Below, piece after piece: positions 16,305 to 23,760 of a DNA stretch of 64,000 nucleotides. Below the pieces are notes generated by a model. The model made no database searches, had not been told where the DNA came from, and was given only the letters and a program-made list of their open reading frames with translations. Made by a program: the position numbers and the translations under genes. Each line of letters begins with the position of its first letter. Position 1 is the first letter of the stretch. Source of the DNA: Macrostomum lignano (taxonomy: Eukaryota); contig NIVC01002462.1 in assembly GCA_002269645.1 (NCBI GenBank), forward strand, positions 62,001 through 126,000, given 5' to 3'.

Positions 16305-17410
16305 TAGATAGATAGATAGATAGATAGATAGATAGATAGATAGATAGATAGATAGATAGATAGATAGATAGATAGATAGATAGATAGATAGATAGATAGA
16401 TAGATAGATAGATAGATAGATAGATAGATAGATAGATAGATAGATAGATAGATAGATAGATAGATAGATAGATAGATAGATAGATAGATAGATAGATAGA
16501 TAGATAGATAGATAGATAGATAGATAGATAGATAGATAGATAGATAGATAGATAGATAGATAGATAGATAGATAGATAGATAGATAGATAGATAGATAGA
16601 TAGATAGATAGATAGATAGATAGATAGATAGATAGATAGATAGATAGATAGATAGATAGATAGATAGATAGATAGATAGATAGATAGATAGATAGATAGA
16701 TAGATAGATAGATAGATAGATAGATAGATAGATAGATAGATAGATAGATAGATAGATAGATAGATAGATAGATAGATAGATAGATAGATAGATAGATAGA
16801 TAGATAGATAGATAGATAGATAGATAGATAGATAGATAGATAGATAGATAGATAGATAGATAGATAGATAGATAGATAGATAGATAGATAGATAGATAGA
16901 TAGATAGATAGATAGATAGATAGATAGATAGATAGATAGATAGATAGATAGATAGATAGATAGATAGATAGATAGATAGATAGATAGATAGATAGATAGA
17001 TAGATAGATAGATAGATAGATAGATAGATAGATAGATAGATAGATAGATAGATAGATAGATAGATAGATAGATAGATAGATAGATAGATAGATAGATAGA
17101 TAGATAGATAGATAGATAGATAGATAGATAGATAGATAGATAGATAGATAGATAGATAGATAGATAGATAGATAGATAGATAGATAGATAGATAGATAGA
17201 TAGATAGATAGATAGATAGATAGATAGATAGATAGATAGATAGATAGATAGATAGATAGATAGATAGATAGATAGATAGATAGATAGATAGATAGATAGA
17301 TAGATAGATAGATAGATAGATAGATAGATAGATAGATAGATAGATAGATAGATAGATAGATAGATAGATAGATAGATAGATAGATAGATAGATAGATAGA
17401 TAGATAGATA
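16305..17410. repeat. (GATA)n microsatellite, ~1.1 kb
   Basis: Uninterrupted GATA run; source of the YLSI ORFs. Confidence 0.99.
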
Positions 17411-17486
17411 TTCATAAGGCAGTTTGAAACTGCAAACCACGCACTCGGAAGATATTGAAGGTTACCAGTTGTCGAATGTTCGAAAA

Positions 17487-17527
17487 AAACCGATATTTCG
17501 GCCCAGACTGGGCCTTCGTCAGGGTTT
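17487..17527 (-). ncRNA. Minimal type I hammerhead ribozyme, copy 1
   Basis: Minus strand AAACC-CTGACGA-A-GGCCCA(GTC)TGGGCC-GAAA-T-ATC/GGTTT. Stem I AAACC:GGTTT, core CUGANGA, stem II of 6 bp, GAAA, loopless palindromic stem III (ATAT). Predicted AUC cleavage 3' of the C at position 17492. Confidence 0.85.
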
Positions 17528-18852
17528 ATTTATTCGGGTTTAAAAACAAATATATTGGCAGTGAAGTTATTGTAACATAATTTCAATATATATATATGCT
17601 ACTTTTGGGGGTGCACTGAGCAGTGTTGAGTAAAGATGTGTACGTATAATTAGTTAAAAACGTGAGTTGAAGCACGCTGATTGGTTAAAGATTGGCAGCT
17701 TAAAGCCTTGCACAAAAAATATTAAAGATGTTAGGTGCTATAGAAAAACAGATTTAGAGCGTAGAAGTGTATGAATAAGCATCTTGAAAAGTTCAACAAA
17801 TAAGTTATTTACGCCCGTAGAATTGAGAACAAATATTAAATTAAAACAGAGCACTGAGAACTTTTCAAAAAGAAGTGCAAGTAAATAGATGTTATTACAT
17901 AAACAGTAAATAAATTGAGTCGCCAGGCAGGCCACTAGTTGCAGTTGGCGGCGTCTGGTCACAGATCGCCGCCTGCACAGCCCCTGGTCACAGGCGACTG
18001 GGCACTGCAGATCAGTTGAGGCTAGATTATCAGTAGTAGTAGCACTAGTAGTTGCAGTAGTAGCTCGTAGTAGTAGTAATGGAAGTAGTAGTAGTACAAG
18101 TATTAGTAGAGTAGTAGTAGAGCAGTCGTAGGCGTAGTCGTAGTAGAGACGTACTGGTAAGCAGTTATTTGAAGTAGCCAGGCAGGCCACTAGTCGCAGT
18201 TGGCGGCGTCTGGTCACAGATCGCCGCCTGCACAGCCCCTGGTCACAGGCGACTGGGCACTGCAGATCAGTTGAGGCTAGATTATCAGTAGTAGTAGCAC
18301 TAGTAGTTGCAGTAGTAGCTCGTAGTAGTAGTAATGGAAGTAGTAGTAGTACAAGTATTAGTAGAGTAGTAGTAGAGCAGTCGTAGGCGTAGTCGTAGTA
18401 GAGACGTACTGGTAAGCAGTTATTTGAAGTAGCCAGGCAGGCCACTAGTCGCAGTTGGCGGCGTCTGGTCACAGATCGCCGCCTGCACAGCCCCTGGTCA
18501 CAGGCGACTGGGCACTGCGGATCAGTTGAAGCTAGATTTTCAGTAGTAGTAGCACTAGTAGTTGCAGTAGTAGTAGTAGTGGTAGTAGAGTAGTAGTAGT
18601 ACAGTCGTAGTCGTAGCCGTAGTCGTAGTAGTGTCGTGCGTCTTAAATATTCAGCTGCAGAAATAGTACTCTTGCTTATCCCAAGTAGATTTTTGGCGGA
18701 GAATAGCTCGTATACGAAGATATTTTGTTGACAAACATGGCGAGCCTCAATAATAGTCCGGTCCTGGGTACAGATATTCATAAGGCAGTTTGAAACTGCA
18801 AACCACGCACTCGGAAGATATTGAAGGTTACCAGTTGTCGAATGTTCGAAAA

Positions 18853-18893
18853 AAACCGATATTTCGGCCCAGACTGGGCCTTCGTCAGGGTTT
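18853..18893 (-). ncRNA. Minimal type I hammerhead ribozyme, copy 2
   Basis: Identical to copy 1; predicted cleavage after 18858. Confidence 0.85.
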
Positions 18894-20514: not shown

Positions 20515-22093
20515 ATTTATTCGGGTTTAAAAACAAATATATTGGCAGTGAGTTATTGTAACATAATTTCAATATATATATATGCTACTTTTGGGGGTGC
20601 ACTGAGCAGTGTTGAGTAAAGATGTGTACGTATAATTAGTTAAAAACGTGAGTTGAAGCACGCTGATTGGTTAAAGATTGGCAGCTTAAAGCCTTGCACA
20701 AAAAATATTAAAGATGTTAGGTGCTATAGAAAAACAGATTTAGAGCGTAGAAGTGTATGAATAAGCATCTTGAAAAGTTCAACAAATAAGTTATTTACGC
20801 CCGTAGAATTGAGAACAAATATTAAATTAAAACAGAGCACTGAGAACTTTTCAAAAAGAAGTGCAAGTAAATAGATGTTATTACATAAACAGTAAATAAA
20901 TTGAGTCGCCAGGCAGGCCACTAGTTGCAGTTGGCGGCGTCTGGTCACAGATCGCCGCCTGCACAGCCCCTGGTCACAGGCGACTGGGCACTGCAGATCA
21001 GTTGAGGCTAGATTATCAGTAGTAGTAGCACTAGTAGTTGCAGTAGTAGCTCGTAGTAGTAGTAATGGAAGTAGTAGTAGTACAAGTATTAGTAGAGTAG
21101 TAGTAGAGCAGTCGTAGGCGTAGTCGTAGTAGAGACGTACTGGTAAGCAGTTATTTGAAGTAGCCAGGCAGGCCACTAGTCGCAGTTGGCGGCGTCTGGT
21201 CACAGATCGCCGCCTGCACAGCCCCTGGTCACAGGCGACTGGGCACTGCAGATCAGTTGAGGCTAGATTATCAGTAGTAGTAGCACTAGTAGTTGCAGTA
21301 GTAGCTCGTAGTAGTAGTAATGGAAGTAGTAGTAGTACAAGTATTAGTAGAGTAGTAGTAGAGCAGTCGTAGGCGTAGTCGTAGTAGAGACGTACTGGTA
21401 AGCAGTTATTTGAAGTAGCCAGGCAGGCCACTAGTCGCAGTTGGCGGCGTCTGGTCACAGATCGCCGCCTGCACAGCCCCTGGTCACAGGCGACTGGGCA
21501 CTGCAGATCAGTTGAGGCTAGATTATCAGTAGTAGTAGCACTAGTAGTTGCAGTAGTAGCTCGTAGTAGTAGTAATGGAAGTAGTAGTAGTACAAGTATT
21601 AGTAGAGTAGTAGTAGAGCAGTCGTAGGCGTAGTCGTAGTAGAGACGTACTGGTAAGCAGTTATTTGAAGTAGCCAGGCAGGCCACTAGTCGCAGTTGGC
21701 GGCGTCTGGTCACAGATCGCCGCCTGCACAGCCCCTGGTCACAGGCGACTGGGCACTGCGGATCAGTTGAAGCTAGATTTTCAGTAGTAGTAGCACTAGT
21801 AGTTGCAGTAGTAGTAGTAGTGGTAGTAGAGTAGTAGTAGTACAGTCGTAGTCGTAGCCGTAGTCGTAGTAGTGTCGTGCGTCTTAAATATTCAGCTGCA
21901 GAAATAGTACTCTTGCTTATCCCAAGTAGATTTTTGGCGGAGAATAGCTCGTATACGAAGATATTTTGTTGACAAACATGGCGAGCCTCAATAATAGTCC
22001 GGTCCTGGGTACAGATATTCATAAGGCAGTTTGAAACTGCAAACCACGCACTCGGAAGATATTGAAGGTTACCAGTTGTCGAATGTTCGAAAA

Positions 22094-22134
22094 AAACCGA
22101 TATTTCGGCCCAGACTGGGCCTTCGTCAGGGTTT
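22094..22134 (-). ncRNA. Minimal type I hammerhead ribozyme, copy 4
   Basis: Identical to copy 1; predicted cleavage after 22099. Confidence 0.85.
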
Positions 22135-23187
22135 ATTTATTCGGGTTTAAAAACAAATATATTGGCAGTGAAGTTATTGTAACATAATTTCAATATATAT
22201 ATATGCTACTTTTGGGGGTGCACTGAGCAGTGTTGAGTAAAGATGTGTACGTATAATTAGTTAAAAACGTGAGTTGAAGCACGCTGATTGGTTAAAGATT
22301 GGCAGCTTAAAGCCTTGCACAAAAAATATTAAAGATGTTAGGTGCTATAGAAAAACAGATTTAGAGCGTAGAAGTGTATGAATAAGCATCTTGAAAAGTT
22401 CAACAAATAAGTTATTTACGCCCGTAGAATTGAGAACAAATATTAAATTAAAACAGAGCACTGAGAACTTTTCAAAAAGAAGTGCAAGTAAATAGATGTT
22501 ATTACATAAACAGTAAATAAATTGAGTCGCCAGGCAGGCCACTAGTTGCAGTTGGCGGCGTCTGGTCACAGATCGCCGCCTGCACAGCCCCTGGTCACAG
22601 GCGACTGGGCACTGCAGATCAGTTGAGGCTAGATTATCAGTAGTAGTAGCACTAGTAGTTGCAGTAGTAGCTCGTAGTAGTAGTAATGGAAGTAGTAGTA
22701 GTACAAGTATTAGTAGAGTAGTAGTAGAGCAGTCGTAGGCGTAGTCGTAGTAGAGACGTACTGGTAAGCAGTTATTTGAAGTAGCCAGGCAGGCCACTAG
22801 TCGCAGTTGGCGGCGTCTGGTCACAGATCGCCGCCTGCACAGCCCCTGGTCACAGGCGACTGGGCACTGCAGATCAGTTGAGGCTAGATTATCAGTAGTA
22901 GTAGCACTAGTAGTTGCAGTAGTAGCTCGTAGTAGTAGTAATGGAAGTAGTAGTAGTACAAGTATTAGTAGAGTAGTAGTAGAGCAGTCGTAGGCGTAGT
23001 CGTAGTAGAGACGTACTGGTAAGCAGTTATTTGAAGTAGCCAGGCAGGCCACTAGTCGCAGTTGGCGGCGTCTGGTCACAGATCGCCGCCTGCACAGCCC
23101 CTGGTCACAGGCGACTGGGCACTGCAGATCAGTTGAGGCTAGATTATCAGTAGTAGTAGCACTAGTAGTTGCAGTAGTAGCTCGTAG

Positions 23188-23760
23188 TAGATAGATAGAT
23201 AGATAGATAGATAGATAGATAGATAGATAGATAGATAGATAGATAGATAGATAGATAGATAGATAGATAGATAGATAGATAGATAGATAGATAGATAGAT
23301 AGATAGATAGATAGATAGATAGATAGATAGATAGATAGATAGATAGATAGATAGATAGATAGATAGATAGATAGATAGATAGATAGATAGATAGATAGAT
23401 AGATAGATAGATAGATAGATAGATAGATAGATAGATAGATAGATAGATAGATAGATAGATAGATAGATAGATAGATAGATAGATAGATAGATAGATAGAT
23501 AGATAGATAGATAGATAGATAGATAGATAGATAGATAGATAGATAGATAGATAGATAGATAGATAGATAGATAGATAGATAGATAGATAGATAGATAGAT
23601 AGATAGATAGATAGATAGATAGATAGATAGATAGATAGATAGATAGATAGATAGATAGATAGATAGATAGATAGATAGATAGATAGATAGATAGATAGAT
23701 AGATAGATAGATAGATAGAGAGATAGATAGATAGATAGATAGAGAGATAGATAGAGAGAT
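23188..23760. repeat. (GATA)n microsatellite, ~570 bp
   Basis: GATA run in the same orientation as 16305-17410, with a few GAGA variants at the right end. Confidence 0.99.

Follow-up and report, generated by a model that had tools for sequence, protein, structure and literature searches.

A hammerhead-bearing tandem array of Macrostomum lignano as a probable insertion of a young, non-autonomous Penelope-like retroelement

Minimal type I hammerhead ribozymes are carried by Penelope-like elements (PLEs), for which the mechanistic reference is the Poseidon element 'PAc' of Anolis carolinensis, from the EN+ clades (PMC11167929). Cercyon of the flatworm Schistosoma mansoni is also a PLE, whose pLTRs contain minimal hammerheads (PMC4209133). 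PLEs are reported to show 5′ truncation, partial tandems and an insertion bias toward microsatellites. In PAc, the ribozyme cuts 26 nt into the ORF and reverse transcription initiates 111–118 nt into it, i.e., 85–92 nt after the cut (PMC11167929). Minimal hammerheads of the PLE type cleaved poorly in vitro, and eight of nine Xenopus dimers showed no cleavage. PAc is the only PLE characterised biochemically; its ribozyme mutants retained normal transposition, and cleavage depended on the protein (PMC11167929). Hammerheads are also found in animal retrozymes, whose units measure 170–400 nt (Cervera and de la Pena 2020, PMC7229834) or 51–972 bp, the latter obtained with a repeat finder limited to period 1000 (Li, Clavereau and Pollet 2026, bioRxiv 10.64898/2026.07.22.740005).

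In a 64-kb stretch of Macrostomum lignano DNA (hereafter the window), the 41-nt sequence AAACCCTGACGAAGGCCCAGTCTGGGCCGAAATATCGGTTT has exactly four exact matches, all on the minus strand, and none in 100 shuffles, which confirms the four identical minimal hammerheads of a preliminary description. Their predicted cut sites (Table 1) and C17-to-C17 spacings of 1620, 1621 and 1366 nt were also reproduced. A literature-style descriptor (core; 0–1 nt after A9; G10.1-C11.1 helix II of at least 4 bp; GAAA; palindromic 15.2/16.2; UH; helix I of at least 4 bp) finds the same four sites only, has no match in 300 dinucleotide shuffles of the window and would, on a rough estimate, yield ~1e-5 chance matches per window. 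Of the motif searches that had been proposed as a check, the descriptor therefore recovers every site, whereas Rfam covariance models, hammerhead families included, give no match to the 111 nt queried, even at E ≤ 10. This is expected because the motif lacks a helix III hairpin, and published work on minimal hammerheads employed RNAmotif descriptors, not covariance models (PMC4209133). The minimum-energy structure predicted for a 57-nt motif consists of helices I and II; the core, G10.1-C11.1, a 6-bp helix II, a 5-bp helix I and the palindromic AUAU are all present. The unpaired A between A9 and helix II, initially considered atypical, is in fact a listed hallmark of PLE minimal hammerheads (PMC4209133), all of whose published hallmarks the array motifs match. 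At the sequence level, these features identify the four motifs as true Penelope-type hammerheads, minimal and of type I. Covariation support is absent among the family copies compared because the hammerhead copies are nearly identical, and the sole helix II change, at locus L003, disrupts a base pair and is not compensatory. Only in a dimer could the hammerheads build an AUAU helix III, of four base pairs, and cleavage is probably inefficient and helped by protein.

Table 1. Positions of the array, its units and their components in the window.
Feature	Position	Strand	Basis or remark
Whole head-to-tail array, 5,785 bp	17406..23190	-	Repeat families, spacings, unit boundaries
5′-truncated first unit, 1092 nt	22099..23190	-	Junction sequence
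Full unit 1, 1620 nt, G1.1 to C17	20479..22098	-	
Full unit 2, 1621 nt	18858..20478	-	Versus unit 1: one T in a short run
Short unit 3, 1366 nt	17492..18857	-	Minus one 255-nt subrepeat
86-nt 3′ tail	17406..17491	-	Same as first 86 nt of unit
(CTAT)n microsatellite, sense downstream of array, target	16300..17410	-	Plus strand reads (ATAG)n
(CTAT)n microsatellite, sense upstream of array	23188..23760	-	
Minimal type I hammerhead, copy 1	22094..22134	-	Predicted cut after C at 22099
Minimal type I hammerhead, copy 2	20474..20514	-	Predicted cut after C at 20479
Minimal type I hammerhead, copy 3	18853..18893	-	Predicted cut after C at 18858
Minimal type I hammerhead, copy 4	17487..17527	-	Predicted cut after C at 17492
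432-codon ORF, unit 1, ribozyme strand	20724..22022	-	ORF list
Further ORF copies	19104-20402; 17738-18781 (347 aa); 22345-23079 (partial)	-	
Conserved pLTR-like block, unit 1 (unit nt 1290-1620)	20479..20809	-	L003 comparison
Equivalent pLTR-like blocks, other units	~22099-22429, 18858-19188, 17492-17822	-	
Internal 255-nt minisatellite, unit 1, 3.7 copies	20904..21844	-	
255-nt minisatellite equivalents, other units	22525-23190, 19284-20224, 17918-18603	-	

The array consists of a 5′-truncated unit, two full units, one short unit and a 3′ tail, and their sum (1092 + 1620 + 1621 + 1366 + 86 = 5785 bp) shows that the limits first given for it are exact. Full unit 1 was the reference for all comparisons. 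The first unit begins within a 255-nt subrepeat (~unit position 529) and directly abuts the (CTAT)n flank, its 5′ junction reading ...CTATCTATCTA on one side and CTACGAGCTACTACTGC on the other; this upstream microsatellite has a degenerate outer edge that adjoins unique DNA. The 3′ tail terminates in ...CCTTATGAATATCT, followed by (ATCT)n. The tail would mark a start of reverse transcription at nt 81–86, a range set by TATCT microhomology with the target.

The same family is present on at least five other contigs of GCA_002269645.1, and 25 hammerhead copies were counted in the window and five contigs. Because multi-unit arrays recur on other contigs, one of them with a transposon inserted within a unit, an assembly artefact is ruled out. 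Full units from three loci differ by no substitution and only by homopolymer-type indels, and the family appears to be very young. (CTAT)n surrounds all eight arrays in a single orientation, and the flanks of L001 are unrelated to those of the window. The 3′ end is identical in all seven readable junctions (window, L002 (two), L003, L004 (two) and L005), 86 nt past the cleavage site, while 5′ ends vary between loci; neither these seven 3′ ends nor the 5′ ends examined fall at the cleavage site. Such one-orientation (CTAT)n sites, with a fixed 3′ end and variable 5′ ends, are the signature of target-primed reverse transcription. With 3′ ends 86 nt beyond the cut and no 5′ end there, the copied RNA must have been uncut or religated at the ribozyme, and the insertion ends are defined without any need for the hammerheads. 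In both L004 arrays, a short 5′ partial with hammerhead is followed by one unit and then by hammerhead plus tail, a layout that corresponds to the 'pLTR-body-pLTR' form of PLEs.

Each full unit combines a ~330-nt block equivalent to a pseudo-LTR, with its terminal hammerhead, the 86 nt, a body of 255-nt subrepeats and an ORF of 432 codons running through this body. The block is AT-rich and contains CCAAT and TATATATA motifs as well as AATAAA. In L003, a copy of ~80% identity, the block is retained at 94–98% (93.6% for the block as a whole, 40/41 for the hammerhead), while neighbouring parts are 74–84% identical, a pattern taken as a sign of selection; from these comparisons, conservation of the hammerhead cannot be separated from that of the whole 330-nt block. 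The subrepeats carry (ACT)n-rich tracts and GC-rich hairpins, number 2.7–4.7 per unit and have a period of 214 in L003; their copy number clearly changes through DNA-level slippage. Unit lengths across the family range from 1366 to 1876 nt, and the L005 array holds units of both 1876 and 1621. The units are indeed larger than those of the animal retrozymes described in the two studies cited here, as had been noted (1.37–1.88 kb vs 170–400 nt, PMC7229834, or 51–972 bp, 10.64898/2026.07.22.740005). Their size comes mostly from the minisatellite, and the layout is that of a PLE with its RT-EN ORF replaced, not that of a small retrozyme made larger.

The initial statement that the array lacks RT and GIY-YIG coding capacity told only half the story: no RT or GIY-YIG domain was indeed found in the unit, nor in the longer ORFs tested around family loci, but the 432-codon ORF of the full units had been missed. 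The ORF starts with an ATG at unit nt 77, within the 86-nt tail, and its product appears in the M. lignano annotation as a hypothetical protein. Its frame is open far beyond chance (per-segment shuffle probabilities 0.005–0.02), the other two sense frames having 25 and 37 stops over the region. A search of 1.8 billion representative proteins gave no homologue of the ORF beyond the element family, and no Pfam domain exceeded the threshold. Within the family arrays, GenBank places five gene models on the ribozyme strand, and the GenBank gene models for M. lignano derive only from stranded RNA-seq assemblies. The sense monomer is predicted to be 49% paired (z = -2.9) and is not highly self-paired.

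Altogether, the absence of an RT or GIY-YIG ORF, the fixed 3′ ends and the variable 5′ ends support the earlier view of the array as a non-autonomous, ribozyme-bearing retroelement. With a probability of roughly 0.6, we read it as one insertion of a very young PLE-like retroelement of M. lignano, non-autonomous, in which the RT-endonuclease ORF has been replaced. In the corresponding model, the minus strand would be transcribed from a putative promoter in the conserved block, or by host-gene read-through or splicing, into an RNA of more than unit length. A PLE-type RT-endonuclease encoded elsewhere in the genome would nick one strand of (CTAT)n, and cDNA synthesis would begin internally, at unit nt 81–86, where the RNA UAUCU could pair with the target. 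Synthesis would then run back across one or more units and halt at variable points, generating 5′-truncated head-to-tail arrays. The 81–86 nt from the cut to the 3′ end match the spacing in PAc (85–92 nt), a likeness that rests on a single reference element. Of the further searches suggested at the outset, the one for additional copies succeeded, while the ORFs tested around family loci revealed no autonomous PLE sharing the hammerhead and tail, which counts against this reading; the M. lignano papers and supplementary repeat table consulted list no PLE class for the species.

As in EN+ PLEs, the repeated terminal region holds a minimal type I hammerhead whose helix I is short, helix II long and helix III palindromic, with one unpaired nucleotide following A9. 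Both are also found as 5′-truncated partial tandems arranged head to tail, both favour simple repeats as insertion sites, and both place the ORF start codon close to where the ribozyme lies and reverse transcription begins, the 3′ end being set by initiation inside the RNA downstream of the cut. Unlike EN+ PLEs, it has an ORF without known domains in place of the RT/GIY-YIG ORF, a unit of 1.4–1.9 kb rather than 3–4 kb, and (CTAT)n as its target instead of the published AT-rich DNA, (TA)n or (CA)n; the 30–40-bp 'tail' extension and the inverted 5′ copies frequent with PLEs were not observed in the arrays and junctions examined. Like metazoan non-LTR retrozymes (PMC7229834; 10.64898/2026.07.22.740005), which are proposed to be PLE-derived and PLE-mobilised, it is non-autonomous and transcribed, and each of its tandemly repeated units holds a single type I hammerhead. 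It differs from them in its unit of 1366–1876 nt, its long ORF, its strict insertion into one microsatellite, an RNA not predicted to be highly self-paired and a minimal PLE-type hammerhead, the canonical retrozyme ribozyme having loop-loop contacts. Neither microsatellite targeting nor an ORF is known for Sm-alpha or newt satellite 2. These are repeats of animals, flatworms among them, that also have type I hammerheads with a weak helix III acting as dimers, but their units are ~330 nt and their hammerheads canonical (PMC4209133). Plant LTR retrozymes (PMC4918200) are likewise non-autonomous hammerhead retroelements of comparable size (circles of 600–1000 nt), with the ribozyme in a repeated terminal region that also holds a promoter, as may be the case here; however, their hammerheads are of type III, their LTRs are true ones with a polypurine tract and primer-binding site, their insertions carry 4-bp target duplications and they depend on Gypsy elements, none of which is seen here.

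The classical retrozyme cycle, in which minus-strand multimers self-cleave into 1.37–1.88 kb monomers, a host RNA ligase circularises them and rolling-circle RT makes arrays, is the published model for animal and plant retrozymes (PMC7229834). A religated circular template would also account for run-through of the cut, the end 86 nt beyond it and the head-to-tail arrays, and units of the window array have almost the same sequence. However, unit lengths differ within single arrays (1366 vs 1620 in the window, 1876 vs 1621 in L005), which repeated copying of one circle would not yield without slippage. The ribozyme is minimal and dimer-dependent, with only four A-U pairs in helix III and copies at least 1.4 kb apart; besides the poor in vitro record of such hammerheads and of the Xenopus dimers, insertion of PAc RNA with a dead ribozyme was normal, and RNA-seq revealed no ends at the cut (PMC11167929). 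The modest pairing of the monomer and the absence of insertion ends at the cleavage site also weigh against this cycle, which we regard as doubtful. Since the RNA behind the insertions did not stay cut at the ribozyme, monomer circles are hypothetical, and the proposal that transcripts are cut into circularising 1.6-kb monomers finds no support in the DNA.

Fixed 3′ ends, 5′ truncation and microsatellite specificity are traits of LINEs too, and some LINEs combine microsatellite targeting with fixed 3′ ends. LINE RTs exist in the genome, with a 5′-truncated ORF2 end (RNase H and CCHC knuckle) 3.3 kb from the array, and subrepeat number shifts by DNA-level slippage. One could picture a SINE-like or satellite-like repeat moved by a microsatellite-specific LINE RT, or amplified by unequal crossing-over, with the hammerhead as a relic without a role. 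Against this, the neighbouring LINE fragment has no 3′ sequence in common with the element, minimal-type hammerheads are reported in PLEs and Terminons, non-LTR retrotransposons being reported to carry HDV-like ribozymes, the cut-to-RT-start spacing agrees with a PLE, and no part of L003 is better conserved than the hammerhead block; we hold this explanation to be quite improbable. An immobile tandem host gene family, encoding a 432-aa protein with Thr-rich and Cys-containing repeats and with an intergenic or 3′-UTR hammerhead-like motif that might aid mRNA 3′-end processing, would fit the single open frame, a period of 255 divisible by 3, a 36-nt in-frame deletion that leaves the L004 ORF open and the RNA-seq-derived gene models, but is very hard to sustain, since copies at unrelated (CTAT)n loci with fixed 3′ and variable 5′ ends indicate transposition rather than gene duplication, the ORF lacks outside homologues and Pfam domains, L004 substitutions by codon position (3, 5, 4) show no third-position bias, L003 has a 214 period, a broken frame and no ATG, and (ACT)n tracts are read in each of the three phases (L, Y and T runs).

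The element is thus best read as effectively an oversized retrozyme of the non-autonomous PLE type. The suggestion that it was undescribed holds for the family and not for the kind: M. lignano harbours a new family of a known kind of element.

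The array and its ribozyme motifs are real, and the preliminary description was right to read them as a retroelement. The four identical hammerheads it had reported are exact matches to one 41-nt string, which is found on the minus strand only and occurs 0 times in 100 shuffles. The cut sites and monomer lengths it had derived also hold, the four predicted scissile positions delimiting units of the expected sizes (see the table). A descriptor following the published definition of the minimal hammerhead (CUGANGA, 0-1 nt, a helix II of at least 4 bp with G10.1-C11.1, GAAA, a palindromic 15.2/16.2, UH and a helix I of at least 4 bp) recovered the same four sites and no others in the window, whereas it gave 0 matches on both strands of 300 dinucleotide-preserving shuffles of the 64 kb; by our rough calculation, about 1e-5 chance matches are expected per window. 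Of the two kinds of search that had been advised, the descriptor thus located every site, while the Rfam covariance models returned no hammerhead at gathering thresholds, nor at E<=10 on a 111-nt slice. We read this miss as a limit of the models and not as counter-evidence to the motif, since the motif lacks the helix III hairpin that those models contain; published work on minimal hammerheads used RNAmotif descriptors (PMC4209133).

The catalytic core, scored as C3 U4 G5 A6 N7 G8 A9 ... G12 A13 A14 with an A15.1-U16.1 pair and H17 ahead of the cleavage site, reads CUGACGA ... GAAA UAU C/G in all four window copies and is unaltered in 25 of the 25 copies collected from the window and five further contigs. 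Helix I (AAACC:GGUUU, 5 bp) is short and open and can be extended past a U-U mismatch. Helix II (GGCCCA/UGGGCC, 6 bp with a GUC loop) exceeds the canonical 4 bp and is closed by G10.1-C11.1, with a single unpaired A between A9 and G10.1. The AUAU at 15.2/16.2 is palindromic and has no loop 3, so that two copies are needed to form helix III; the minimum-energy fold of the isolated motif consists of helices I and II. The minimal hammerheads described in the pseudo-LTRs (pLTRs) of Penelope-like elements (PLEs) have a short helix I, a long helix II, G10.1-C11.1, one unpaired nucleotide between A9 and 10.1, a palindromic 15.2-16.2 and no loop 3 (Cervera and de la Pena, PMC4209133), and every one of these features is present here. 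The additional A, earlier regarded as atypical, is in fact a consistent trait of that class (PMC4209133) and is diagnostic for the PLE-type motif. Only two helix changes occur among the near-identical family copies, and neither provides covariation support: a solo copy has U in place of G1.2, and in helix II of the diverged copy L003 a G to A change costs one pair and leaves a 4-bp helix.

Counted from G1.1, just after cleavage, to C17, a unit comprises the 86-nt region repeated as the tail of the array, some 165 nt of single-copy sequence, a 255-nt subrepeat that is present 2.7-3.7 times and combines (ACT)n-rich tracts with GC-rich hairpins, an AT-rich stretch of about 390 nt, and the hammerhead. 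Five other contigs of GCA_002269645.1 (L001-L005), reached via an annotated protein, the other members of its cluster and a single distant hit, all carry the same family. Its units measure 1330, 1365/6, 1585, 1616-1621 and 1876 nt, and the differences correspond to whole 255-nt subrepeats plus one 36-nt deletion. Between the full units of the window, L001 and L002 there are 0 base substitutions, and only single-base or AT indels in simple runs distinguish them. Indels of this kind are typical of long-read assembly error. The absence of substitutions between full units from three loci indicates that the main subfamily is extremely young. The recurrence of multi-unit arrays at unrelated loci and the interruption of one of them by a transposon speak against an assembly artefact, which had been named as one outcome that would undo the array. 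This interrupting sequence in L002 is bounded by terminal inverted repeats (CAGTGTTGGGCA...TGCCCAACACTG), shows a target duplication of 8 bp (CTTACCAG) and looks like a non-autonomous hAT-type DNA transposon; its position inside a unit makes the array older than at least one other transposition event.

Features of the hammerhead array, of the surrounding window and of the other loci carrying the family
Feature	Location	Strand	Size	Remark
5'-truncated unit	window, within 17406-23190	-	1092 nt	first segment, array read 23190 to 17406
Full unit (reference)	window 20479-22098	-	1620 nt	second segment
Full unit	window, within 17406-23190	-	1621 nt	third segment
Short unit	window, within 17406-23190	-	1366 nt	fourth segment
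3' tail	window, within 17406-23190	-	86 nt	last segment; repeats unit start
Hammerhead	window 22134-22094	-	41 nt	C17 at 22099
Hammerhead	window 20514-20474	-	41 nt	C17 at 20479
Hammerhead	window 18893-18853	-	41 nt	C17 at 18858
Hammerhead	window 17527-17487	-	41 nt	C17 at 17492
ORF of full unit	window 20724-22022	-	432 codons	on ribozyme strand; also in copies
(CTAT)n flanks	window 16300-17410, 23188-23760			element-strand reading; same microsatellite both sides
(ATCT)n	window 46275-46982	+	0.7 kb	no element
ORF with RNase H	window 26491-27519	+		PF00075, E = 3.6e-14
A-rich and (CAT)n repeats	window 27632-28333			after LINE-like ORF
ORF matching CCDC39	window 8906-11288	-	452 aa	E = 1e-62
ORF matching CCDC39	window 3282-3710	-	302 aa	E = 2e-51
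tRNA-Leu(AAG) gene	window 5700-5779	-		Rfam 56 bits; ARAGORN concordant
Array	L001		at least 4 units	flanks unrelated to window flanks
TTTAAACC	L001 15597-15604		8 nt	between (ATCT)n and truncated unit
Spliced gene model	L001 10001-16085			on ribozyme strand
Solo truncated copy and array	L002		array of 3.4 units	one unit with 1.2-kb hAT-like transposon inside
hAT-like insertion	L002 7514-8740		1,227 bp	within one unit
Solo copy	L003			only about 80% identical
Two arrays	L004			each a short 5' partial, one unit, tail
Spliced gene model	L004 10001-13567			on ribozyme strand
Array	L005		7 hammerheads	one unit of 1876 nt
Unrelated sequence	L005 6070-6448		about 380 nt	between upstream (CTAT)n and 5' end of array

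Insertion of the element follows a strict pattern. All arrays (8/8) lie inside (CTAT)n, in one orientation relative to the repeat, and the readable 3' junctions are identical (7/7, the diverged L003 included), ...CCTTATGAATATCT giving way to ATCTATCT... where the internal unit sequence continues with GTACCC; the hammerhead lies 86 nt short of the 3' end at every readable insertion end. The 5' ends vary by locus, falling at assorted subrepeat positions or, in L004, at about unit nt 1461. A constant 3' end, 5' truncation at variable points and a specific target entered in one orientation are together the hallmark of target-primed reverse transcription. The final five bases (TATCT) also occur in the target, which places the start of cDNA synthesis at unit nt 81-86. 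Head-to-tail arrays occur in the window, L001, L002, L004 and L005, and solo truncated copies are represented by L003 and by one of the L002 insertions. At loci other than L005, the element abuts the microsatellite directly; the unrelated stretch in L005 could have arisen by 5' transduction, template switching or another insertion. That the element is the sole source of (CTAT)n is unlikely: the (ATCT)n tract at 46275 stands as an example of an empty target, and unique DNA free of the element lies beyond the upstream repeat of the window, both of which indicate that the microsatellite was there beforehand as a target and is more than a product of the element.

These properties agree with those of PLEs, in which 5' truncation is frequent, partial tandems occur and insertion is biased towards microsatellites. 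Both L004 arrays have the PLE order of a pLTR with hammerhead, a body, a second pLTR with hammerhead and a tail, and the hammerhead is located, as in PLEs, in a repeated terminal region near the 3' ends of insertions, where it closes a conserved 330-nt block. The sole PLE reconstituted in vitro, PAc of Anolis carolinensis, is cut by its ribozyme 26 nt into its ORF and has an internal start of reverse transcription 111-118 nt after the ORF begins (PMC11167929). The distance from cut to start is therefore 85-92 nt in PAc versus 81-86 nt in the M. lignano element, and the start codon of the element ORF (unit nt 77) likewise falls between the ribozyme and the reverse transcription start site. Two features that are optional in PLEs were also sought: neither inverted repeats nor adjacent inverted 5'-truncated copies were found, and, as regards a 30-40-bp tail extension, the sole extra sequence is the 8-nt TTTAAACC at the L001 5' junction. 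This octamer matches unit nt ~1565-1572, just upstream of the hammerhead, and may be a template-switch footprint. A conserved hairpin just 5' of the reverse transcription start was dropped as a candidate, local folds being weak, non-significant and unlike between two variants.

An autonomous PLE has one ORF combining a TERT-like reverse transcriptase (RT) with a GIY-YIG endonuclease, whereas the M. lignano element has neither. Indeed, the absence of RT or GIY-YIG coding capacity that had been noted for the array is confirmed for the unit ORF, and neither domain was found in the longer ORFs tested across about 175 kb (the window and the five fetched loci), where only a LINE RNase H/CCHC fragment appeared; the element is on these grounds non-autonomous, and at most a non-autonomous PLE derivative. 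The LINE fragment, an ORF of the window ending in a CxxC...H...C knuckle, resembles the 3' end of a LINE ORF2 that has lost its 5' part and has no 3' sequence in common with the hammerhead element. A literature search found no paper connecting Macrostomum with hammerheads, retrozymes or PLEs, and exact-pattern scans of metagenome and viral contig collections gave no match. Altogether, the element is best described as non-autonomous, PLE-type, young and specific for (CTAT)n; in M. lignano it represents a new family of a known kind of element.

The diverged copy L003 also shows which parts of the element have been kept. Compared with the window unit, its identity is 84% at the end of the last subrepeat, 74% over nt 1196-1289, 93.6% over nt 1290-1584 and 78% in the remaining tail, and the hammerhead matches at 40/41 positions. 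So uneven a pattern is not what uniform decay after insertion would yield; it speaks for purifying selection, within the active lineages, on some 330 nt that end with the ribozyme, and the conservation of the hammerhead is not statistically separable from that of this block. The block contains CCAAT, TATATATA and AATAAA motifs and, if PLE pseudo-LTRs are a guide, may hold the promoter. A TATA box at unit nt 1517, considered as setting the start just upstream of the ribozyme, was rejected because L004 has a 5' end, possibly that of a full-length copy, which lies upstream of it, near unit nt 1461.

Like metazoan non-LTR retrozymes, the element forms tandem repeats with a type I hammerhead in each unit. 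However, metazoan retrozymes are small and non-coding, with sizes of 170-400 nt (PMC7229834) or 51-972 bp in the widest survey (10.64898/2026.07.22.740005), while the element measures 1330-1876 nt and carries a 432-codon ORF. The earlier remark that the unit is larger than animal retrozymes is thereby upheld against the published ones, and its large size comes mainly from the internal minisatellite. A preprint proposes that animal retrozymes are generally non-autonomous PLE derivatives; on that view, the M. lignano family would be an oversized member of a retrozyme-PLE continuum.

It had further been proposed, by analogy with retrozymes, that transcripts of the array self-cleave into monomers that circularise. 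No sign of such processing is visible in the DNA: no insertion starts or stops at C17/G1.1, and every insertion continues through a hammerhead to stop 86 nt on, from which it follows that the template was either uncut at this site or religated into a circle. Religation would thus also allow insertions to cross the cleavage site, yet helix III would amount to only four A-U pairs between two copies at least 1.4 kb apart, comparable PLE motifs cleave poorly in vitro (PMC4209133), and 8/9 published Xenopus retrozyme dimers gave no cleavage. In the PAc system, the ribozyme needed protein, ribozyme-dead RNA inserted normally and 0 RNA-seq ends fell at the cut site (PMC11167929). Unequal unit lengths within one array fit heterogeneous multimeric transcripts better than one circle recopied, although slippage among perfect 255-nt repeats could explain them as well. 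Finally, retrozyme circular RNAs are described as highly self-paired, whereas the sense monomer, folded as a circle, is predicted to be only 49% paired (z = -2.9). The processing of transcripts into monomer circles consequently appears unlikely.

The 432-codon ORF of each full unit shows signs of a coding frame that is genuine or was so until recently. Its frame contains 4 stops per unit, all 3' of the ORF, as against 25 and 37 in the two remaining sense frames; calculated for each of four segments on its own, the probability that a given frame is open is 0.005-0.02, so the open frame does not result from composition alone. The 36-nt deletion of L004 is in frame and leaves the ORF open. Homologues outside the M. 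lignano family were absent among 1.8 billion representative proteins, Pfam gave no domain (the sole match, 'New_glue', was sub-threshold and low-complexity), and an exact look-up of the 432-aa and 347-aa ORFs of the window returned no record. Further points against a conserved protein are that the frame passes through (ACT)n tracts in each of the three phases, that L004 substitutions distribute over codon positions as 3, 5 and 4, with no third-position excess, and that L003 has a 214-nt subrepeat, a broken frame and a lost ATG. The ORF may be either a recent relic of a captured coding sequence or a subfamily-specific gene. A bolder reading would see a currently active ORF-carrying hammerhead retroelement, in which a PLE backbone has exchanged its RT-endonuclease for the 432-aa protein and either a 1.4-1.9-kb RNA is released by the ribozymes, circularised and translated, or the protein serves to mobilise the element itself. 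We consider this highly improbable; if true, it would be the first case of an animal genome, here that of a transgenesis-capable flatworm, encoding a retrozyme-like RNA circle that itself codes for protein.

Evidence for transcription comes from the genome annotation. On their ribozyme strand, the arrays contain five GenBank gene models, two of them spliced: in L001, host-gene exons are joined across 3.8 kb of (CTAT)n to the element, in frame with its ORF, and a model in L004 links one array to the following one by splicing. According to its authors, the M. lignano annotation rests on stranded RNA-seq assemblies only, and transcripts overlapping known repeats were removed; it follows that sense transcripts exist and that the family is absent from the authors' repeat library. 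Transcripts evidently take splice acceptors and terminal exons from the element. As for the host genes of the window itself, the two ORFs matching the ciliary coiled-coil protein CCDC39 are probably two large exons of one gene; a CCDC92-like coiled-coil ORF is found further along, and a tRNA gene is also present. The window is extraordinarily dense in mini- and microsatellites (50 TRF rows score >=200; their periods range over 4-49, and many of the arrays measure 0.5-1.4 kb), consistent with the published statement that tandem repeats make up ~13-15% of the M. lignano genome.

The in vivo role of PLE hammerheads is a standing question: their cleavage in vitro is poor, and in the sole reconstituted system transposition of ribozyme mutants is normal. 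Surveys limited to repeat periods of 1 kb overlook larger hammerhead-bearing tandem elements. Such elements also enter annotations under the name 'hypothetical proteins' and become part of host transcripts by splicing. The interest of the present family is moderate and chiefly practical: it is apparently active now, as the substitution-free full units from three loci suggest, and it makes the question of PLE hammerheads approachable, being small, having one sharply defined target, (CTAT)n, and residing in a laboratory flatworm with transgenesis. It could therefore be used as a convenient reporter of how PLE-type elements are mobilised, what the ribozyme does and how microsatellites are targeted.
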